DNA of 22,105 nt from Bugula neritina (lineage: Eukaryota > Animalia > Bryozoa), in the NCBI GenBank assembly GCA_964035545.1, contig CAXIUT010000127.1, positions 1 to 22,105 on the forward strand. The letters are read 5' to 3'. Shown in pieces: positions 1-22,030 of this stretch. The notes beneath the pieces were generated by a model. It worked only from the letters and a program-made list of their open reading frames with translations. It had not been told where the DNA came from and did not search any database. The position numbers and the translations under genes were made by a program. The stretch's first letter is position 1, and each line of letters starts with the position of its first letter.

Positions 1-63
1 CCCAACCCCAACCCCAACCCCAACCCCAACCCCAACCCCAACCCCAACCCCAACCCCAACCCC
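1..63 (+). repeat. Left telomere (CCCCAA)n
   Basis: Perfect C4A2 repeats (Tetrahymena-type telomere) at the start of the window. Confidence 0.99.
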
Positions 64-64
64 T

Positions 65-322
65 GAATTGTATAGACAAGATCTCCAGTCCATGAATACC
101 AAGATAGGAAATATCAATGAAGAGATAATCTAAACAATGACTCCTCTGATTGATTCTTTAAACAGAATGCTTTAGATGGGAATAAACAACCAGAAGTAGG
201 AAAATGCTAACTTCCAATAACAATTAACCGAACTCAAGAAGGAGAAATCAATTCTTGCTCAAATGATCGTAGCCTCTCATAAGAGGTCAGAACAACTCAA
301 CGAAGAAGTAGGTCACTACTGA
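65..322 (+). CDS. Small coiled-coil protein, probably 5'-truncated by the telomere
   Basis: With TAR=Glu the frame is open from the telomere junction to TGA 320-322: ELYRQDLQSMNTKIGN...NQKEENANFQEQLTELKKEKSILAQMIVASHKRSEQLNEEVGHY. The first ATG is at 92, only 28 nt from the telomere. Confidence 0.65.
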
Positions 323-410
323 TTTACCCTTCTTAATCACTACATACATATCTATCAACTCTTTTATTAATCAGCCAGCCTTTTTATAGGATAGTTAATA
401 TTATCAACCG

Positions 411-1944
411 ATGAAATAAGTTCAAGAGAAAGCAAGAAGCAGAAATATAACACCCAACTTCCTCCGCTTCAGAAGTAACTCCTTAGCTATTTAGGGAAAA
501 GCATAGGACCAACTGGTAAAGAAACAGAAGAAGATAAAGTGTAAACTCAAATAACTACTGAACGGTCAGATAGAAATTCTGTTAGAGGTAGTAGCTTTGA
601 AACACAACAAGCAAGAGAACTTCGATTAAGTCAACCAAGTATCAATACAATTATCAAGAAACGAAAGTTGTTAAGAGACAGAGTAGTGAAACGGAAGAAA
701 ATATGTACAAACATATTCACCTTACTCTTGCAGATCATCTTAATAGAACAAGATAGAACAGTTCGCAAAAAAAAAGTACAATCCCTGATCGTAACGCCAC
801 TGGAAGTAGTTTAAGTAGTAGAAACAACGACTATAAAAGAAACTCAGCTTCAGGAAAGATCGTAATTAAAACTTCTCGACAACCTTCAAATCCAAAAAGA
901 AATGAAGAATCTTTATAAAAAGAAGAATTAAGAGCTAATTAAACTAAAGCTTAATTATTAAAAAATATGAATAAAAAGACCTTTGCTCCTAACTATAAAC
1001 ACCATCAAAAGATGAAAAAAATAGAAATTACTTAAAAAAAGAAGCCTTAACTAGCATAAAAAAAGAAAATAGAAGTGATTGATAAGAAAAAATGTAGCAA
1101 AGGCAAACAAATGAATTTAATTGTTGAAATAAAAGGATAAGAATAAATAAATAAGTATGAAATATTGGGATAACTTGGAAAAGGAGCATATGCTAATGTA
1201 AAAATGGGAATTGATAAGAAAACTAAAGAAAAAATAGCTGTCAAAATCTATGATAAAAAGAAATTAGACTAGCCAAACAAAATTAAAAATCTTGAAAGAT
1301 AAATAAACATCTTAGCAGAGTTGTCACATATGACTATTGCTAAAATTATTGAAGCCATTGAAACTCCAAACCATCTGTATCTTATTTTATAATACGGAGG
1401 AGCAAATTCACTTTACAACTACTTGCTCTCAAAGCCATAACATCGTCTACCTTAGCATTAAGCAAAATAGTTTCTTTTGGTAATCGCTGAAGCCTTGTTT
1501 TATCTTCACGGTAGAGATATCGTTCATAGAGATATAAAGGCCTAAAATATTTTGATTAATCGTCATCGTCAACTCAAACTGATTGACTTTGGTTTTAGTC
1601 TCAGATGCCCAGCAAATGATGTTATTGACACCTTCTGTGGCACTCCAACCTATATGGCTCCTGAAATAGTATCAAAAAGAGATCATTGTCCAGTTTATAC
1701 AGATATGTGGTCACTCGGAATCTTATTCTATGTAATGCTTCAGGGAAATTATCCTTTTAGAGCAAAAAATGAAAACTAATTGTTCTAAAAGATTAAGAAA
1801 GGCCGTTTTGAGTACATTCATAACGACATAACAAAAGAAAGTAAGAAGTTAATTGAAGGATTATTACGTGTCAATCCTCTCGATAGGTTGAATATACGTG
1901 ACATTTTATCCAAAGAAAACAGAGAATGGTTAAAGAGCTAGTGA
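411..1944 (+). CDS. Ser/Thr protein kinase, CAMK group (SNF1/MARK-like), with a long low-complexity N-terminus
   Basis: Motifs GKGAYANV, IAVKIY, HRDIKAENIL, DFG, FCGTPTYMAPE and DMWSLG. 20-nt introns at 475-494 and 639-658 join ATG 411 to the kinase frame. Confidence 0.93.
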
Positions 1945-2005
1945 TTCAGTTTTACAATTATTAAAATAAACATCTATAAACATTTGAAAATCGTTAATAT
2001 TTTGA

Positions 2006-2532
2006 ATGAGTCACAGAAGAGATGTTTCTCCTCAATACAGACAGGAGTCAAAAAGAAGAAAAGCAGCCCTTTCAACAGATCAGGAAGTATAAGTCAGAGA
2101 AGCCTTTGATCTCTTTGACCCTCATCAAACATCTCACATCACATATCATTAACTCAAAGTCATTCTCAGAGCTTTAGGATTTGATATTAAAAAGTCAGAA
2201 GTTGTTCAATTGGCAAGATAGTTCGATGTCAGATAAACTGGTAGAATCAGTTACGAAGATTATGTTGAAATTATGAAGAGAAAATATGGAGAAAGAGATC
2301 CTATTGAATAAGCTCTCAAAGCATTTAAACTTTTTGATGTTGATGGTCGAGGAAAGATTAGTTTAAACGATCTAAGAAGAGTTGGTAAATAGCTGGGAGA
2401 AGGTTTAAAAGAAGAAGAGCTTGTTGCTATGATTGAAGAATTTGATCAAGATGGAGATGGCTAAAGTACATATCATTTAATATAGTTAATGAAGAATAAT
2501 TTTTGGCAATTCTACGTCCTTCCATCATTTGA
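2006..2532 (+). CDS. CETN3: Centrin (centrin-3/Cdc31-like EF-hand protein)
   Basis: EVREAFDLFD...YHELKVILRALGFDIKK...ELGE...EEFDQDGDGEINEEEFLAI. 20-nt intron at 2466-2485. Confidence 0.9.
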
Positions 2533-2602
2533 TCTCAATTCATATCTTTAAGAAAAAGGATTTTATTTAATATTAATATAAATTATAATTAATCCTCACC
2601 AT

Positions 2603-3060
2603 ATGTCATAAGCCAAAAGTCAACTTGTTCAATGCTTTGGAAGAAAGAAAAATGCTGTTGCAGTTGCAGCAGTCAGAACTGGCAAAGGAGTCCTCAGAGT
2701 CAATGGATCTCCTATTGAACTCCTTGAACCTCAATCACTCAGAGTTAAAGTCCTTGAACCCATCCTTCTTCTCGGTCTCAAGAGATTCCAGAATCTTGAT
2801 GTCAGAATTAGAGTCAGAGGTGGAGGTTATGTGGCTCAAATCTATGCCATCCGTCAAGCTCTATCTAAAGGAGTTGTTGCTTACTATCAAAAATATGTGA
2901 ACTAAACTGAGAAGAGAGAAATCAAGTGTACTTATTGATTGATTTAGAATTACTTCTCCAATATGACCGAGCTCTTTTGGTTGCAGATCCAAGAAGATGT
3001 GAACCAAAGAAGTACGGAGGTGCTGGAGCTAGAGCCAGATATCAAAAATCTTATAGATGA
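2603..3060 (+). CDS. RPS16: 40S ribosomal protein S16 (uS9)
   Basis: [14 protein letters not shown]...[16 protein letters not shown]...[28 protein letters not shown]. 20-nt intron at 2928-2947. Confidence 0.98.
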
Positions 3061-3162
3061 TAGTTGGATTCATGTATTTCAGATCAAATCTACTCATTAT
3101 AACTTATTATTTATTTATATAAGAATAACTCGATCACTAACAGGTTTGAACTAAATTTTTAA

Positions 3163-4846
3163 TCAAGAACTCTTCCTCGATACTCCTCGTTTATAGTATC
3201 TTTGTTACATTTTATTGCAGTATTTTTGATAAAGCCTATTGATCATTATCTATCAATCTTTCAAAACTTAAACTAAACTGCTTGTTTACATAAGCTTGCC
3301 ATTTAGAATATCTTTAAATCCAAGCAAACTCTCTTTCATCATTCTGATCAATACCTAACTCAATAATTACAGACATATTTGGATTTTTTTCATCTATTTT
3401 GCTTGATATCATAGAACTTTGTCTCTAATTTATTGTGCTCTAAGATTTTTATATAATTTTTGAATTTATAATTTATTTATCTAAAAATACTTTCCTTCGA
3501 GCTTGATATTCCCGAGTAAAGTCTTGAACTTCCGTTCTATACTAGCTAAAGCTTTTCCAATCTATTTGAGTCTATTAATTTAACTGTTTATTGATTCTTT
3601 TGAAAAACATCTGATAAGATTTAATATTCTCTCCGAAAACTCTGTAGATATCATTATAATTTAACAAAACACGAGATAATTTTTAATAAGTTTCTGATTT
3701 AATAAAAGCGTTATTTTGATTAAGATCAACTATAAAAAATTTAAACTGCTGTTGTTGATATGTAAGTTAATTAGTTATTTCTTGAATACTTTTATTAATT
3801 TTAACATTAGAATCTCCTATATCTCTCCATAGCTTTTATAATAATTAACTCTTCTTTGAATAATCTTTATTTAATCGCTGATTCTATTCAGAAATTTAAA
3901 TAGGAACACATCCATCTACATTCTTTATTAACTTTATATGATTTATTAAAGTTTAACCAAGCTTCTTCTTGTGATTTACATAATTTTAATATTTTATTTC
4001 TTTAAAAAAACGAAAAGTATAAAGATTCTCAAATAATTGTTTATTCTTGCATACTTTATTAATAAATCTCCTACATTTTTACACTAAAATACCTCTTATC
4101 ATCTAATTATCCACTTTACCTAGTTACTTCTATGTTATCTATAAAGGAGGCACAAAAGTATATGGAAAACCTTTTGTTAATGCTTTTCTAAGGAAAATAA
4201 AATCTTAAATAGTTCTTTATACTATTTCTGTGAAAATATTAGTCTTTACGACAACCCAAAGTTCCAGAGTACCTCCTATACCAAAGAATCCTCCTCTTTT
4301 ATTTGTAAAGTTTCTAAGTAAAGTTAAAAATACTTTGTAAAATTGATTGAAATATCGTTATAATTATAATGTTCTTGGAAAAAAGGCTTTTCTCTTTTAC
4401 ACTATTCATATCCATTCAGTTCATAATCCCAAGCTCCATTACTCTGAAATTATTTATAGAAATACATAATAAACTTTCGTTGGATTCCACTATTTGGTAA
4501 TTCCATTGATAATAGGTTTTTAGACAATAAAGCTTTGAGTTTAATCTTCTTTTACATCTTTTTTTGGGTGTTTTTCCTTGAAATGATTAACAATTTTTTC
4601 TAGTTATTCGCTTGTAAACAAATCGAGATTATGTTATTCTGTCTTAATTCCTTTCTTATCCTTCAATTCATCAAGAAAATATTGTGCAAAACATTCTAGC
4701 ACTTGTTAGTCACCATCATAAAAATCCATTATTTGTTCTTTGAGAAACTGCTTTTTATGAGCAAGTTCTTGATTAATCTCGTCTCCTTCTTGTTATCGCT
4801 TTTACAAATACTGCTCAACAATCTTTTACTCTTAATTATCCTCCAT
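3163..4846 (-). CDS. PX-domain (sorting nexin-like) protein
   Basis: PX core IVERTIEDFIFLRKALTKGFPYTFVPPL followed by a helical C-terminus. Several tiny introns (e.g. 4444-4465, 4314-4333). Exon structure and stop position only partly traced. Confidence 0.72.
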
Positions 4847-4913
4847 GTCAGTTTTTAATATCAAATCTGATATTTTAATTCTTATACTTAGACAATATTA
4901 TTTAATCAATAAG

Positions 4914-5836
4914 ATGGCTTCTCTCTCAAACCTCTTTTAAAAAAGATCCAAACAACCTCCTCAACTTTCAAATCTCTTCCAAATGTAAGCTATCAATAAA
5001 TTTGAACATCTACCACAAATCTAGAGGTAGCCAGTCATCACATTATAAGAACCATAACATAAAAAAGATTAGCCTTAGGACTTATAAAGCACAATATTTG
5101 TTGGAAATGTGCCTCTTAGTTATATTGATCGAGATTTGAAAAAAATATTTAAAGAATATGGCAAAATAAGCAAAATATGGTTTAGATCTGTGCCTGTTGA
5201 AGATAGTAAAATGTCAACAAAAGCTAAATGCATCCTCCAAAAATATCAAGATGGAGCTGATTCTCAAAATGCATACGTAAAATATGAAACAAAAGCACAA
5301 GCTTAAAAAGCATGTAAAGTCAATGGCTTTATCACTGAATAGCATACTTTGAGAGTATCCTTGTGCCTTGACAATAATTAAGACTATAAATCTACTTTGT
5401 TTGTTGGAAATCTACCAACTAACATCAGAGAAGAAGAATTAAGAGACCATTTTAAATCGAAAGGAGAAATTATCAATGTAAGAGTTATTAAAGATAAACG
5501 TACATTAAAAGGAATAGGAATAGGTTATGTAAGATTTGCTGTACAGAATGGTATAATATTTATTATATAGATATGTTTAAAGCCCTTGATACTATGAATG
5601 GGTCAGTACTTAATGATAGACCTTTAAGAGTAAAGCGAGCCATAGAGAAATCAAAACTGTAGAAAAAGGCGAGAACAGTAAATTAAAACAAAATAAATAA
5701 AAAAGGCTATACTCCTCCGAGACAAAAAAAGAATTCTAAAAATGTAGAAGCCTATAAAAGGAGAAAAGAACGTTCAGAAGGGAAAAAAGATAAACCTAAA
5801 AATCGTCAACATAAAAAGAAAATGATCAAAAAATGA
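4914..5836 (+). CDS. RBM34: Two-RRM nucleolar RNA-binding protein, RBM34/Nop12-like
   Basis: STIFVGNVP...KIWFRSVPV...SQNAYVKY; second RRM TLFVGNLP...GIGIGYVRF; Lys-rich tail. 20-nt intron at 5551-5570. Confidence 0.85.
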
Positions 5837-5909
5837 AGACTTTATCATTATCTATAACATCTGATTAATATTTTAAATTAAATATGAAGTTAGAGAGTTA
5901 GATTGAATA

Positions 5910-5996
5910 GGGGTTGGGGTTGGGGTTGGGGTTGGGGTTGGGGTTGGGGTTGGGGTTGGGGTTGGGGTTGGGGTTGGGGTTGGGGTTGGGGTTGGG
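5910..5996 (+). repeat. Internal telomeric tract (GGGGTT)n
   Basis: 87 nt of perfect G4T2 repeats in the orientation of a right-hand chromosome end, followed directly by unique sequence. Confidence 0.99.
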
Positions 5997-6588
5997 CTGG
6001 AAAATGGACTAGATTAAAATGTAAAGATGTGTTTTAATATCTTTCATCTATATAGGCAAAAATCATAGAACTATGTAAGACAGTGATAAAAAGATACAAA
6101 CAAAGAACCTGAGATAGCTCGATACATAGTTCACCCTTAAATGACACAGTTGACCACTTTAAATTTGAGTAATATTAGAATAAAGAAGGAAACAATAAAA
6201 TAGTCAGTCTTTGTCACTTAGTTGATATAAAAGCTCCTAATTTGACACATTTAAGCCTAGGAGACAATAATATATCTAGACTAAGACCATTAGCTAAAAT
6301 GGTAACTCCTAATCTAGAATACCTGAGTTTATGTATTATTTTTTTTATGAAGATTCCAACTAAGTGACCGATCTCTAACCAATTAGTGAATGCAATTTTC
6401 CAAAACTAAAAGTATCTTTATAAATAAAAAAGTTTTTCATTCTAGGAATAAACAAAGTGTCACATATTAAACCTATATGTAAATGGCAATTTGACAACTT
6501 TGAAAGTTTGAGCATGGAAAACAACCGATCTTGCAGTAACACTATTACTAGCAATTGGAAGTATACATCCAAACTGATCTACATGTGA
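5997..6588 (+). CDS. Leucine-rich repeat protein (24-aa LRRs), probably 5'-incomplete
   Basis: LTTLNLRNNKI..LTHLSLGDNNI..LEYLSLYSNEV..LKFFILGINKV after removing introns at 6075-6093, 6169-6188, 6333-6352 and 6412-6432. The frame is open back to the telomeric tract with no in-frame ATG in the first exon. Confidence 0.8.
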
Positions 6589-7068
6589 AGATAATTATTG
6601 AATGAAATCAATTACTGTTTTTGATAAAAATATGACCTTATTTAGAAATATTATTTTGTCTCTAAAATTCAAATTAACTCTTAATTTATTAACTAAAAAT
6701 TTAAGCAAGATATTTAAAATTTAAATTCAGTTTATCTTCACTCAATAATATTTAATAATCTTAATTTTATCCTTAAAACTCAGATAAAGGCTTTTATTTT
6801 TATTTTTAAAATCTTTTTGGATGTTAAAATATCAGTTAGAAATTATAATAAGCACCTAAATATCTTTATTTATAATTGATACTATCAAAAATTCATTTTC
6901 ATTAATTTATGTATATGATCTTTTTAGAGGAATTATACTTTTACGAAAAGTAAAAATTGAAATTTATAAAGTTTAGTTGATATATTTAAATATTTAAAGT
7001 GAATCTTTAATAGATTTCTATATACTATTTTGTTTAAAAGTAAAGATATAAATGGAAGTATCAATTTC

Positions 7069-7496
7069 ATGACCAGAACAAAACAAACTGCCAAAAAGAC
7101 AGCTCCCAGAAATCCAAAATTGCAGCCTTTTAATATGAAAGTAGCAAAAAAATCAGCGCCATTAAACCCTGGAGTCAAAAAGGCACCTCGATTCAAATCT
7201 GGCACTATTGCTCTCAGATAAATTCGAAAATATCAAAAATCTGTACTTATTAATTTATATAGACTGAACTTCTTATACGAAAGCTTCCCTTCCAAAGATT
7301 AGTCAAAGAAATAGCAACCAGCTTCAAACAATAAGTCAGATTCCAAAGTCAAGCATTACTAGCTCTGCAAGAAGCAGCTGAAGCATACATGGTCAGCCTC
7401 TACTAAGACACCAATTTATGTGCCATTCATGCAAAAAGAGTTACCATTATGACTAAGGACCTGCAACTCGCAAAAAGAATCAGAGGACAGATGTGA
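7069..7496 (+). CDS. H3: Histone H3 variant with a divergent N-terminal tail
   Basis: MTRTKQTAKK...[32 protein letters not shown]...YEDTNLCAIHAKRVTIM. 20-nt intron at 7243-7262. Confidence 0.97.
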
Positions 7497-7544
7497 TCAT
7501 TCATTATATGAAAATTAAATTATCAATATTTAACTAACTATCAC

Positions 7545-8948
7545 TCAAAACTCAAGCAAATTCTCTCTAAGAGGAGTGTCTATCTTTTACTAAAATCCAT
7601 GAAACGAAAACCTGAGAAAGTTGTTTGAAGAAACACTGATTTATGATTATTATAGCTATTTTAAAGAACTTTCCAGGGAAGATAATCTGAGATAAATTGG
7701 ATTTGATCCGATCCAAAGTGTAAAGATATCGTTATATTGTTCAAAACATTGTATAATCCATCGAACATATGCTAAGTTAGCTTAGTTAGTCAGAATATTG
7801 ACTGTAAAATCAAACTTTGAAGGATTTTTGGCTGTATAAAAGTCAAGATAGTTACTTTAATTTCCCCTGATTCTTTAAACAAGAATATTCAAATAGTTAC
7901 TATATTCTTAAAAATGGTATAGAGTTTTAAATTATTGAGAGAAAAAGGCAGTCTTTTTCATCAAAGGAAGCAGATTATTGATGCAAAGTGATCTACAATG
8001 CATGTACACAACTGTAAGTACTTTGAAAATGGTAAGAGTACTATCTTTACAGTTAATATGAACAAAACGATGAGAGTGTTGCCTATTAAATGTACCAGGA
8101 GAACATTGTTTGTTTATCTGACCCCTTTGATAACCTTTTTTATTGAAGATCTCTGAATTCCCCTTTCTACTTTTGATAATTATTTCCAGTTAAAGAAGAT
8201 ATATTTGTTCTGTAAGAATTCCAACTGAAAACATACAATTAACCAACTCTTTACTATTAGGAAACTCTCTTCTAGATATTTATTTAATCTTAAGATCATT
8301 TTTTAATCTAGATTCTTCCAGTTCTTTGGTTTATCGATCTCTTAGAGAGAACTTTTATCTCAAATCTGCAGATTATTTTTTCATTTTCATCATATCACAT
8401 TTTATTTATTTAATTTTTTCTCTTTTTATTGCATTAATTTCTTCTATTCTATCAGAACAATCTTTCATAGAGTATATTTCATAGTCAATTATAAAATTCT
8501 TTTTAGAAAAGAACAATAATCTTCTCTTTTTCATGTCATAGAATAAATTCTTTTTGCTTAAACTATAACTTCTTTTTTGAATCTCCTCTATTCTATCTAT
8601 GAGATCATTAACTTTTTTTTGTTTTTCCTCGAATACTTTAACAATTTTGTCATAGCGTAAAAATGAACTCTTTGTATAAGACTTTAATTTTGAAAGACTG
8701 AACTATTGAGCAACTAAAGGATTAACCGTTAGTGGTGAAACAACTTTCATTTATGCTTTAAAAATCCATTTGTTAGTTCCAAGACTTTCTTCATGCTTCA
8801 TCTTTTTCTTCAATGTTGAGAAGTAATCTTAAGAGAAATATCTCATTCTCTTCGAGAAAGTTGAATTGAGAGTAAGAACATTTGTTTTTGGTGTTTTAGG
8901 GCTTTAAAGAACTATAGAAGGAGGTGAATGACAGCCTCGCTGCTACAT
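7545..8948 (-). CDS. Hypothetical protein (~467 aa, partly coiled-coil)
   Basis: Uninterrupted ATG-to-TGA frame under TAR=Glu (MEQRGCHSPPSIVLESPKTPK...RENLLEF). No domain recognised. Confidence 0.7.
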
Positions 8949-9028
8949 TGATAAGATAATTATACTAAATTGAGTCAAGTAATGAGATAAATATAAATTA
9001 ATCGGAAAATGTAGAAATATATCTTAAA

Positions 9029-9565
9029 TCAAGGAAAGAAATAAGATAAGGCGACATTCTTTTTCTTCAACTTGGCAAATTATCTTCTATTGATTTCACT
9101 TATAGCATATCTGGGATTTTACAAAATTAGTTCAGCTTTTTTGAGTTATATTTTGTAGTTTTCGACAACCAAAACTCCTTCATCGATTGTATGATCTAAA
9201 GTTTTATAATTTGAAGTAAAGCACCAACTATTCATTCCAATAATGCCGTTATTATTTCCAAAAACAACATTACTTTTTCCTTGAATTTTATTCTTTTTTC
9301 CATCGACATAATTACCAGCTTCATATTTCATCTCTGATTTAGCCCAATGTAGAGCTTCAGCTGCTTCAATTACAGCTTCATACAATAAGGTTCGATTGCA
9401 AAATCTCCAGTTGTATGTCGGGACAACCAATTTAACATAGTTGACACGATAGTTAGTCAAATATTGCATCTAAGGAGATAAGTAAGGAATAGATATTCTC
9501 TGAATTTCAGCGCTTGAGAGCTTGATAATCAAAAGAACTGACAAAATTGTCAAAAGTTTATTCAT
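9029..9565 (-). CDS. Secreted protein (178 aa) with heptad N-x-(V/I)-x-G repeats
   Basis: Signal-peptide-like MNKLLTILSVLLIIKLSSA; repeats GNYVDGK/KNKIQGK/SNVVFGN/NNGIIGM; intronless. Confidence 0.8.
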
Positions 9566-9644
9566 TGTTCTTCTTCTATTTTTAGATTATAGAAGGATTA
9601 ATTAGATTGAACATAATATATTCTAGAAATGCCAATCTATCAAA

Positions 9645-10605
9645 TCAATCTTCCTTGCTAATCTACTCATATAAACCTCCATTTTTCTTCTTGTTTTTCT
9701 TCTTTTTGTCCTTGTTCTGGCCATATCTTAATCCAATCAAAGCCAACATTACTCCTGATCCTCCCAAAGTCATTTCTTGCCGATATGCACATATTCCCTC
9801 ACTAGAATCACTAGAACAAGCAGCCACAGAGTAGAATATCACAAGCATTGATAAAAATGATACAAATTGCATCCATTTATTTTTAGCCAATCTAAATATA
9901 AAAATTAATATACGAAAAGAAATTATTTCTCTAACCACGATAAGAAAACAGATATAAAGTCTTATCATATCCTTCTTTCATTCCAGAAATTCTAATTATA
10001 CTTTTATTTGCCACGTTTGCCATCTGAGTCACATAGATATTATCAGTATCGTCCATTATTGAATGCCAATAACAGTGTTTTGATACTTTAGATATATAAT
10101 GCTTTATATTTGTAACAAAATTCTGAATAAGGATATTAGTACAGTTTAGAAGTCTTTATCAGAATGGAAATATGTTCCATAGAAAGGCTATATAAAATCA
10201 ATTAGAGATTGATTAGTTGCCTAAGTAGTTGTACTTTTCTAATCGAAAGTAATCGTCAAATTATTTGCTTTATTTTGATTAATATACGTTTTTTATCTTT
10301 TAATTCAGGAAATTTAATAATGGATGGATACTAAATATACTTAGGCCTCCAAACCATTAGTATGATATTTTTAATTTTTAATATAGCTGATGATTTGACT
10401 TGATATTGTATGAAATAGGCAGGACTACGACAAACAGCCCATAAAATATCAGCAGGCGATATCTACTCAATATCCTTCACTTATTTAATCTATATGTACT
10501 AACATTGTTTAAAGGTTGATCGAAACTTACCAACTACAAGTGGCGAAGTATATTTTTAAGAGGTCTAGCATCAAATGTGTTCTGAATTATCTGAAGATCT
10601 GACAT
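9645..10605 (-). CDS. Hypothetical membrane protein with two C-terminal hydrophobic segments and a basic tail
   Basis: Frame reconstructed with four 20-22-nt GTA..AG introns. C-terminus WMQFVSFLSMLVIFYSVAAC...GGSGVMLALIGLRYGQNKDKKKKNKK. Confidence 0.65.
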
Positions 10606-10671
10606 TATTTAAGATGTTGATTATATTAATTTAGAATATTGAATCAAGTTTAACGTTTTGTATTTATTTAA

Positions 10672-11616
10672 ATGAACGAAGAAAACGTTATAGAAATCCC
10701 CATTGAAGATGTTAAAAATTAAGATAGTTCTTCTCATATGATTGAAGAATAAGAAGAAATAGCCAAAATATTGCCTCTCAAAATGCTTAAAGATCAATGG
10801 CTAACTGTTTCAAGAGCACAATACAAAAGAACTTGCGGCATCTCTTCTCTAATATCTATCTGGAATCATCAATTTTCTCACCTCGGAATGGGCAAAAACG
10901 ACCCTATCTGTGTCGAACAAGCTATGCTAAAACTCAACCTTATAGGAAAAGGATCAGTATAATAAAACATGCGGAAAAAGTTCAAAAAAGTTGGATAACT
11001 AACTGAAAAGACAGAAAATAATAACACATAAACCAAAGAAGAAGTTCCAGATGAAAATGACTTCAGCAATAAAACTTTACATTAATATGTTAATTCAGTA
11101 TAATTTGGATGTTTCACAGGAAATGATACTCTTCTGAAATGGTATCGACTTCTCTGCAGAATATATGGAGGCAATGGAAGATCTTGTCTATTCTATAAAA
11201 CCAATTCAGAAAGATCTCTTCATAAAACTTAAAAAAGTGCAAAAAAAGCATTAGTCGAAGGACTAAATAATCCCAACATGAGTTTTATCTATCATGCCTA
11301 TGATCACTACTTCTGTCCAGTTGGATACTAGTTCATTCCCAAAGAAGAACCTTAAATTGATACTTTCGAATCAACCCAAGTAAACTAAGAAGGAAATTAA
11401 CTTTATATCATGGTCGGATAATCATCAAAAATGTTTGCAGGCATCCATGTATTCAAATGGAGCGAAATCCAACTCGATCTAGAAACATATTGGCCCAAAT
11501 ACTATAATATCAGACATAGAAGTGATGGAGTTCAAGTAAGAAAAGGAAAATAAAATGATATCCCAGCCACATCAACTATTGACTGCATTATGGCCTTTTA
11601 AAAGTTCAAAGATTGA
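10672..11616 (+). CDS. BIVM: BIVM-family protein (basic immunoglobulin-like variable motif; Cys/His peptidase-like core)
   Basis: SRAQYKRTCGISSLISIWN, FGCFTGNDTLLKW, FIYHAYDHYFCPVGYE and CIMAF match recalled BIVM motifs. Intronless, 314 aa. Confidence 0.85.
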
Positions 11617-21425: not shown

Positions 21426-21960
21426 TCAGATTTCAATATTTCCAATGAGGTTGGCTGATTGAGCCGCAAGAGCACTTTTTTGCTAAACATCAGATATAGT
21501 CTTTTATGTTGTATATGGGTATTAGCAAGAACATTTTAGTAGTTTCTGTGAAGAACTCTGCGAAGGACCTGTCGGTTGATCTCGTTCTCTCGGTTGATTT
21601 CAGAATCTTCCTCATTGATCCCGAAAAGCTATATCATATGAAAACGAGTTTTAGACTAGTTTAAAGACCCCGCGAATGTATTCAACCTTTCATTGTGGTG
21701 CTAAGTGGGAAACATGGGTAAGTCTCTGTAAAATACCTTAATAATAAATTTCGGAATATTTGTGGCCTTTCTTTTCTTTTTTAAGGTTTTTCTATCAAGT
21801 GAGGAAGAACTCTATCAAAAGGTTTGATGAGTTGTCTGGGATCGAACACTACTTTTCTGATAGATTTTTTAGAAAGAGACTTATCATCTTCTAAAATAAT
21901 CATCTCCTAACTCTAAATTTTAGGTTATTCTTCTTTTTGGATTGGTTCTGAGACTTACAT
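21426..21960 (-). CDS. Hypothetical protein with an apparent frameshift
   Basis: MEVSEPIQKEEEPK... continues best in the -1 frame after an A6 run (plus-strand T6 at 21777-21782): KRKATNIPKFIIKVFYRDLPMF...LYLMFSKKVLLRLNQP. The 3' end is uncertain. Confidence 0.5.
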
Positions 21961-22030
21961 AAAATAGGCTATTAATCACAATATTTATTAAACCAAAATA
22001 TTTCTACATTCTTAATTATATTATCACCAA

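Follow-up and report, generated by a model that had tools for sequence, protein, structure and literature searches.

Telomere tracts at a peritrich ciliate locus point to optional chromosome ends, one of them within a gene

Telomere repeats stand on either side of the first 6 kb of the window, the 22,105-nt stretch of ciliate DNA analysed here, and the question raised by this locus is whether they delimit a small macronuclear chromosome whose ends fall within genes. The record opens (CCCAACCCC) with a terminal C4A2 tract of 10.5 repeats at 1-63, and a G4T2 tract of 87 nt (14.5 repeats, plus strand) lies at 5910-5996. Both had been claimed in a preliminary description of this DNA and both are present; no comparable match arose in dinucleotide-shuffled versions of the window. 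That description had also taken 1-5996 for a self-contained telomere-to-telomere molecule, which does not hold: the G4T2 tract is internal and is abutted from 5997 by unique DNA (CTGGAAAATGG...), with neither Ns nor a C4A2 tract between, and the record ends only at 22105, where a third tract (22031-22105, 75 nt of G4T2, plus strand, co-oriented with the internal one) closes it. In all three tracts, the C4A2/G4T2 repeats have the correct polarity and abut unique sequence, the pattern of de novo telomeres. The start phase A|GGGGTT and the end phase TTGGG are likewise common to all three, as would fit complete natural ends. The telomeres are the only inverted duplications in the window, which thus carries no internal sign of amplification chimeras, and a tRNA and Rfam family search of it found none.

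In this DNA, UAA and UAG specify Glu and UGA is the sole stop (for example, DGDG[TAA]INEE[TAA]F in centrin and YVN[TAA]TEKREIK in uS9). Six compact genes occupy 1-5996, four of which (kinase, centrin, uS9 and RRM) have Pfam matches in stop-free pieces; neither the 76-aa ORF nor the SNX-like gene matched a Pfam family. A 28-nt leader (64-91, plus strand) runs from the left telomere site to ATG 92 of ORF1 (92-322, plus), a 76-aa, coiled-coil-like product whose frame is open upstream to 65. There follow on the plus strand a Ser/Thr protein kinase of 497 aa (411-1944; predicted 20-nt introns 475-494 and 639-658), the N-terminus of which, MKEVQEKARSRNITPNFLRFR, matches that of the relative discussed below, a centrin-like EF-hand protein (2006-2532; 20-nt intron 2466-2485) and ribosomal protein uS9 (S16e; 2603-3060; 20-nt intron 2928-2947). 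The next gene, on the minus strand (3134-4846, given here without intron positions), is labelled SNX-like (PX-BAR-like) from reading its translation, and the last, on the plus strand, is RBM34/NOP12-like with two RRMs (4914-5836; 20-nt intron 5551-5570; stop 5834-5836). A 47-nt spacer of 15% GC (5837-5883) separates it from ATG 5884. The six spacers have 15-22% GC, compared with 30% at 5997-6140 and 39% in the 64-91 leader, both of which are coding-like.

What lies beyond the internal tract can be judged from a related peritrich that also reads UAR as Glu. The first kinase relatives, L001-L006, had no synteny to the window. One JGI contig of 7,277 nt (L024) has the window's gene order, namely centrin, uS9, SNX (minus strand), RBM34, LRR, H3 and then the next gene, and contigs from other samples (L019, L020 and L021) agree with it; in the window, a histone H3-like gene (7069-7496, plus) anchors the synteny downstream. 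That gene order is kept across the tract argues that the DNA from 5997 onward is the native neighbour of RBM34 and not a random chimera. The LRR coding sequence at 5997-6074 (AGKWTRLKCKDVFEYLSSIEAKIIEL) is homologous to, and aligns with, SGKWKRLEASVAFTHLSELSPSILEV of the relative; a phase-1 intron splits a Tyr codon at the same position in both genes; and the bases that border the tract on its two sides correspond to neighbouring bases there. The predicted LRR exons, homologous and collinear in the relative, lie at 5997-6074, 6094-6168, 6189-6332 and from 6353 (entry 5997-6600, plus), with introns of 19 nt at 6075-6093 and of 20 nt at 6169-6188 and 6333-6352. When codon usage in the window genes was modelled (4.7 +/- 2.8 bits for in-frame 26-codon windows, -0.7 +/- 4.0 off-frame), the frame supported by homology scored best at both 5997-6074 and 6096-6140; the model is too weak for judging 9-codon pieces. 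Because 5997-6074 is homologous LRR coding sequence, the telomere site at 5909-5911 appears to interrupt the LRR gene just after ATG 5884, about 27 nt into the first coding exon, and 5884-5909 (plus; MKLESEIE...) would be the putative gene start. The relative's LRR gene has a longer N-terminus that is built differently, so that ATG 5884 is best called a predicted start codon.

The preliminary description had reached a similar view by another route, arguing from the frame 65-322, which is indeed open up to the telomere, and from ATG 5884, which does stand 47 nt after the RBM34 stop and run into the repeats. As arguments, neither survives. With a one-stop code, open frames at junctions are expected by chance: 82% of ATGs in the window have nine open codons upstream, and when the window is cut at random, an ATG that points outward and stays open to the cut lies within 73 nt at 62% of the sites, while a frame open for 86 codons or more begins right at the cut at 57% of them. 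Open frames and ATG spacing thus carry no statistical weight in favour of cut genes.

At the left-hand site, the evidence comes from public-run contigs (k=31 Logan contigs, which cannot cross an 87-nt repeat; repeats were masked in the comparison). A 4,931-nt contig of X1 (record 1) passes the site by 2.2 kb: letters 1-2739 lie on 2808-70 with zero mismatches, and 2,192 further letters, an extension known from the letter count only, continue to the left. The orientation convention of X1 was checked through X2 record 16 and a SNP bubble at 2809. An X3 contig has 105 letters left of position 70 and covers 70-243 of the ORF1 region; because the uS9 intron 2928-2947 is missing from it, it is RNA-derived, and ORF1 is transcribed. 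ORF1 probably represents the 3' portion of a longer gene. This view rests on composition and on the reach of the contigs past the site because ORF1 has no detectable homologue: an orthologue upstream of the relative's kinase could not be detected (score 36 versus a null of 39 +/- 5). The left telomere site thus probably lies in a transcribed, coding-like region, a weaker case than that of the right-hand site.

The same position can therefore be both capped and read through, since the record ends in a telomere at 64 and the X1 contig continues beyond it. At the right-hand site, the record itself has the tract and then the syntenic neighbour. The relative behaves likewise at two sites: L028 is capped by a telomere 29 nt upstream of the centrin ATG, a position read through by nine other contigs, and L015 is capped where at least three contigs (L012, of 94.5 kb, L013 and L018) read through. 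A search for same-species contigs with the exact products of five ORFs returned nothing on record, and the exact DNA patterns beside both telomere sites were found in none of the JGI metagenomes, IMG/VR or GTDB genomes. Six words sampled across the right junction (5962-6040) were present in part, four in X1 and five in X2; three of the six are pure telomere, and the pattern is ambiguous.

Taken together, these results favour one reading, to which we assign a probability of roughly 60%: the window is peritrich macronuclear DNA in which telomeres are added at optional, heterogeneous sites, giving overlapping minichromosome isoforms. Some molecules would end at 64 and 5909-5911, forming a six-gene minichromosome of ~5.9 kb, and others would read through both sites; since the right-hand site falls within the LRR gene's first coding exon, the LRR protein could be encoded by read-through copies only. 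A double-strand break, programmed or sporadic, would be healed by telomerase, and no conserved breakage signal would be retained. The 87-nt tract before its native neighbour is most likely the product of amplification and/or assembly merging capped and read-through isoforms; its presence in every molecule is less likely. The two-telomere 5.9-kb molecules, the shares of the isoforms and the route of tract embedding are what we infer here. In the k=31 contigs, unable to cross the repeat, no same-species two-telomere molecule, read ending at either site or tract-free 5909|5997 junction was seen. The central proposal of the preliminary description, namely overlapping molecules, telomeres added within genes, and other molecules carrying the intact copies, is borne out by the collinearity and the X1 contig; as a whole, its observation is confirmed in part and its interpretation supported in part. 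Against optional telomere addition as the explanation stands that no concrete assembler or amplification step can be named that would place a complete telomere before the native continuation.

The best-surviving alternative, which we regard as unlikely, is that the tract is genuinely interstitial. Telomerase would have healed a break at 5909-5911, and end joining would then have put the new, short telomere back onto the partner that originally lay to its right, so that the real molecule would be 22 kb long with a telomere scar in the LRR gene and the 5.9-kb molecule would be unnecessary. Interstitial telomeric repeats at repaired breaks are known from primates and rodents, where they are in the germline, short, degenerate and fixed. 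The window tract resembles them in standing with one polarity between otherwise contiguous flanks, and differs in being perfect, full-length and somatic and in that it may be an artefact. The flanks are native neighbours, contiguous and collinear in the relative down to adjacent bases, with little or no sequence lost, and the perfect tract passes directly into unique DNA without Ns; moreover, developing ciliate macronuclei have high activities of both telomerase and end joining. Ends there are either joined or telomere-capped (PMC7702705). However, the tract ends in the TTGGG phase of both true termini, for which random re-ligation gives a chance of 1/6; the LRR frame is broken when the tract is present; no internal tract occurs in 200 kb of contigs from the relative; and the left-hand site has a read-through contig for which no tract is needed. 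It is also doubtful, though conceivable, that full-length tracts lie inside macronuclear chromosomes at numerous places across the genome, even in coding exons, each marking a break that telomerase healed and end joining then rejoined to its partner, the trace of a contest between fragmentation and repair. If embedded tracts were physically real, telomerase and end joining would have acted on one break.

Very improbable is the suggestion that the internal tract marks no telomere addition and consists of telomeric reads misplaced into a continuous locus by an assembler or gap filler. In its favour is the ambiguous word pattern across the right junction. Against it, the tract has the register of both true ends directly after unique sequence, and the relative's optional telomere sites come from unrelated assemblies. 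Replacement of an equal length of native DNA by the tract is rejected on account of the flanks, whose counterparts in the relative are contiguous. Weakest of all, and scarcely credible, is a discrete fixed-end minichromosome at 1-5996 with end ORFs by chance and a random join at 5997 (a chimera of multiple-displacement amplification or assembly, or concatenated unrelated records). In its favour, short reads of cells amplified with REPLI-g are a common source of peritrich genomes (PMC12411067). Run-off synthesis with a subsequent template switch would leave co-oriented [X]-(G4T2)n-[Y] joins that include a complete end, and the open-frame arguments are at chance level. Against it, 5997 onward is syntenic with RBM34 in four independent contigs of the relative, a random join would reach the syntenic neighbour with a probability of ~1e-4, 5997-6140 is coding without a start of its own and the X1 contig passes the left-hand site. 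A random chimera and a concatenation of unrelated contigs are rejected on the synteny.

In Tetrahymena, fragmentation is precise and directed by the Cbs, a signal conserved at every site, and in spirotrichs gene-sized chromosomes carry one gene (rarely a few) between fixed ends with C4A4 telomeres. The locus shares developmental breakage and de novo telomeres with both, and its small unit resembles spirotrich chromosomes. Unlike those chromosomes, the unit has six genes, C4A2 rather than C4A4 repeats and optional ends. Unlike in Tetrahymena, comparison of the three telomere junctions found no common motif above chance, and Cbs-like sites in the window did not exceed chance (4 matches, 1.5 expected), as the preliminary description had noticed for shared motifs; its further suggestion of near-random sites is not supported, three junctions being too few to judge. 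A breakage signal lost with eliminated DNA would be invisible in somatic sequence.

Closer parallels exist. The minichromosomes of Paramecium bursaria are mostly 8-16 kb, with several genes and two telomeres; telomere sites vary highly among molecules of the same gene content, ~30% of them lie in coding regions, and a breakage motif was not found (Cheng et al. 2020, PMC7702705). Like the window, P. bursaria is oligohymenophorean with C4A2 telomeres, multigene units and variable, sometimes coding, motif-free sites; the window differs in being peritrich, in UAR=Glu, in its 5.9-kb unit and in its embedded tract, a feature not described for P. bursaria, and it is known from contigs and synteny, whereas P. 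bursaria is known from long reads of whole molecules. In Blepharisma stoltei, alternative telomere addition sites number in the tens of thousands, with telomere-bearing reads at internal contig positions where most molecules read through, giving overlapping isoforms (Singh et al. 2023, PMC9942806). The same sites are thus capped and read through, as here, although Blepharisma is a heterotrich with another telomere repeat, molecules of ~130 kb on average and mostly single-read sites (PMC9942806). In ageing Paramecium tetraurelia, internal breaks are healed with telomeres without a motif, and intact sister copies in the polyploid nucleus mask the loss (PMC13076228); these de novo telomeres resemble those of the window, but they are sporadic and rare per site, whereas the window sites were frequent enough for assembly. 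The architecture is therefore not, as had been suggested, a poorly described one, having precedents in P. bursaria (PMC7702705) and Blepharisma (PMC9942806). The locus is best read as a peritrich case of the optional telomere addition already described there.

Peritrichs are a large and ecologically important group of ciliates, and to our knowledge the searchable literature says little about their somatic genome architecture. The locus suggests that they join P. bursaria and Blepharisma in optional-site breakage, even within genes, and that a polyploid nucleus supplies the read-through copies on which they would depend. It bears on gene-dosage control, on the choice of breakage sites without a signal and on the reading of peritrich assemblies; internal telomere tracts in this assembly may flag alternative ends and should not be read as misjoined unrelated contigs.

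The three sites differ in setting. Coding sequence appears to be cut at 5909-5911 and, on weaker grounds, coding-like and transcribed sequence at 64. The third site, 22030, is in ordinary spacer upstream of a gene: the 71 nt preceding the tract have 18% GC, are spacer-like and lie upstream of an inward-pointing ATG at 21959.

The window contains three perfect telomeric tracts: C4A2 repeats at 1-63 (63 nt), G4T2 repeats at 5910-5996 (87 nt) and G4T2 repeats at 22031-22105 (75 nt), the last of which closes the record. Dinucleotide shuffles of the window produced no match like these three. All share one register, starting A|GGGGTT and ending ...TTGGG, and each length is 3 mod 12, suggestive of short telomeric duplexes whose terminal nucleotides are defined. 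Because the tract at 5910-5996 has this common start register and end phase, it resembles a complete natural end. It is nevertheless internal: unique DNA (CTGGAAAATGG) lies directly 3' of it, with neither a C4A2 tract nor Ns at that point, and the record continues to the third tract, which has the same orientation. The preliminary description, in which 1-5996 was a telomere-to-telomere minichromosome whose ends appeared to cut genes, was correct as to the tracts and genes but overlooked this internal position. Nor is gene cutting true of every telomere site, since site 22030 falls in an ordinary spacer, and the gene that points inward from it begins 71 nt away. Located 27 nt inward of the junction with the right terminal tract, TAAACCAAAATATTT (21989-22003) differs by three mismatches from Cbs, the conserved chromosome breakage signal of Tetrahymena; Cbs-like matches in the whole window number 4 against 1.5 expected, near chance.

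The first and second tracts enclose six closely spaced genes, separated by 47-88 nt: a 76-aa ORF (ORF1, 92-322), a Ser/Thr kinase of 497 aa (411-1944), a centrin-like EF-hand protein (2006-2532), uS9 (2603-3060), an SNX-like gene on the minus strand (3134-4846) and an RBM34/NOP12-like protein with two RRMs (4914-5836). A Pfam search, run on stop-free pieces of the translations, matched the kinase, the centrin-like protein (EF-hand), uS9 and the RBM34/NOP12-like protein (RRM). The peritrich code is used, with TAA and TAG at conserved Glu positions, as in centrin (DGDG-E-INEE-E-F) and uS9 (YVN-E-TEKREIK), and TGA as the sole stop. Introns have the form GTA...AG and are nearly uniformly 20 nt long (475-494, 639-658, 2466-2485, 2928-2947, 5551-5570, 6169-6188 and 6333-6352), with a 19-nt candidate at 6075-6093. 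From the ORF1 stop to the kinase ATG, the stretch 323-410 has a GC content of 29.5%, above the 15-22% of the other spacers, and may be unrecognised coding or UTR sequence.

The sequence around the internal tract was compared with contigs of a related ciliate, found by a search with the RRM piece and then by look-up with the relative's centrin. The relative is a peritrich by its UAR=Glu code, read in a kinase-paralogue contig (L012) from the same metagenome sample group, and its proteins are 54-95% identical to those of the window for the block's five well-conserved genes. On a 7,277-nt JGI contig (L024), centrin, uS9, SNX (minus strand), RBM34, a leucine-rich repeat (LRR) gene, H3 and the next gene follow exactly the order of the window, and contigs from other samples (L019, L020 and L021) have the same gene order; one additional minus-strand gene, for an acidic protein, stands between RBM34 and LRR in the relative (L019, about 1665-2235). 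Translation of 5997-6074 gives AGKWTRLKCKDVFEYLSSIEAKIIEL, for which the relative's counterpart is SGKWKRLEASVAFTHLSELSPSILEV. In both species a tiny phase-1 intron comes next, dividing a Tyr codon (T|AT) at a position kept between them, and is followed by NKEPEI or NKEPDI. The bases immediately left and right of the tract (AGATT... and CTGGAAAATGG) correspond to neighbouring bases when aligned with the relative, and the GC content of 5997-6140 is coding-like (30%, against 15-22% in six spacers). On this homology, intron position, alignment and composition, the tract lies within the LRR gene, in its predicted first coding exon, and the gene extends beyond the tract through 5997-6600; ATG 5884 would be in frame with that exon if two boundary Gs are native.

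How an 87-nt tract comes to have native sequence behind it may be explained by an amplification or assembly artefact. The internal tract stops at the same point of the repeat as the true termini do and disrupts the LRR frame, and the relative's assemblies are without internal tracts, none being present in 200 kb of related loci; REPLI-g amplified cells are, moreover, the usual source of peritrich genomes (PMC12411067). Alternatively, the tract may be a real interstitial scar, left by a break that was healed and then re-ligated, as its flanks belong together and have lost little sequence, if any. Of six words sampled from the right junction of the tract (5962-6040), three of them pure telomere repeat, X1 contains four and X2 five, a result compatible with either reading. 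A random chimera at 5997 and a concatenation of unrelated contigs there are both excluded, given that collinear order in the relative and flank homology identify the following DNA as the native neighbour.

At the left site, Logan contigs (k=31) from three studies, four public runs in all, were placed on 34-5939. Orientation was set by a record of run X2 (record 16, with 16 loose letters behind 5827) and by a 61-nt SNP bubble at 2809, which ends the main contig of X1, the source run, on the right. This 4,931-nt contig places letters 1-2739 on 2808-70 with zero mismatches, and its other 2,192 letters fall left of the window's telomere position; since a k=31 contig is unable to span a 63-nt hexamer repeat, the extension is non-telomeric. 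Its mean depth is 17.8, compared with 22-23 in neighbouring contigs, a drop that would roughly fit a telomere at 64 on about half of the copies. X1 contains 99% of the words of 64-5909, yet none of its contigs was placed on 5550-5939, the one covering that stretch having been removed by filtering. Contigs of a further run, X3, exactly lack the uS9 intron and end at gene borders, and are thus RNA-derived; one of them (279 nt, on 70-243) carries 105 further letters upstream, in an organism with 5' leaders of a few bases. The 28-nt leader at 64-91 has 39% GC and is by composition about 21 times likelier to be coding than spacer. ORF1, for which neither Pfam nor comparison with the relative's locus gave a detectable homologue, is probably truncated by the left telomere site. 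Another X1 contig agrees with the window to about 173 and then diverges for at least 255 letters (GCGGGTAGTTGGTTGGAGAG...); it may represent a paralogue, a rearranged isoform or a chimera. The 16 letters behind 5827 in X2, CCCCACCCCCACCCCC, look like a poly-G sequencing artefact.

Optional telomere sites are seen in the relative, in assemblies unrelated to that of the window. A contig of an NCBI assembly (L028) starts with (C4A2)3, 29 nt before the centrin ATG, and this point is read through by nine contigs of other samples, two of them for 10 kb. A second contig (L015) starts with (C4A2)2, with read-through in L012 (94.5 kb), L013 and L018. Native sequence and repeat have 2-3 bases in common at both sites, as telomerase healing would give.

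We favour, with a probability of roughly 0.6, heterogeneous and optional telomere addition that yields overlapping minichromosome isoforms. The 5.9-kb unit would be one isoform, and others would continue past both sites with the LRR gene intact. Fragmentation into overlapping molecules had been proposed in the preliminary description, largely rightly, but the open frames invoked there at the telomere sites, true as observations, are uninformative. As TGA makes up only 2.1% of triplets in the window, such frames are common by chance: nine open codons precede 82% of all window ATGs, and a randomly placed cut has an outward ATG within 73 nt, in a frame open as far as the cut, in 62% of cases, and begins an open frame of 86 codons or more in 57%. 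The architecture is also better described than was supposed, with direct precedents for this peritrich locus in P. bursaria (two-telomere molecules of 8-16 kb, with highly variable telomere sites, ~30% in coding regions; PMC7702705), Blepharisma (46,705 alternative telomere addition sites; PMC9942806) and ageing Paramecium (breaks healed by new telomeres; PMC13076228). The literature searched, incomplete in coverage, yielded no report of it in peritrichs.

Other differences from the relative were seen. The kinase-centrin gap is 61 nt in the window (1944-2006) versus about 6.6 kb with several genes between the orthologues in the relative (L022:3375-10000); this gap and the relative's extra acidic-protein gene may reflect a species difference or somatic deletion. 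The intron at 2928-2947 has no counterpart in uS9 of the relative. In another kinase-bearing relative (L007, an ENA scaffold of 10,861 nt), the called genes repeat at a 5,179-nt offset (3738-10859), which suggests that a ~5.2-kb unit is tandemly duplicated or that its assembly is circular or concatenated.
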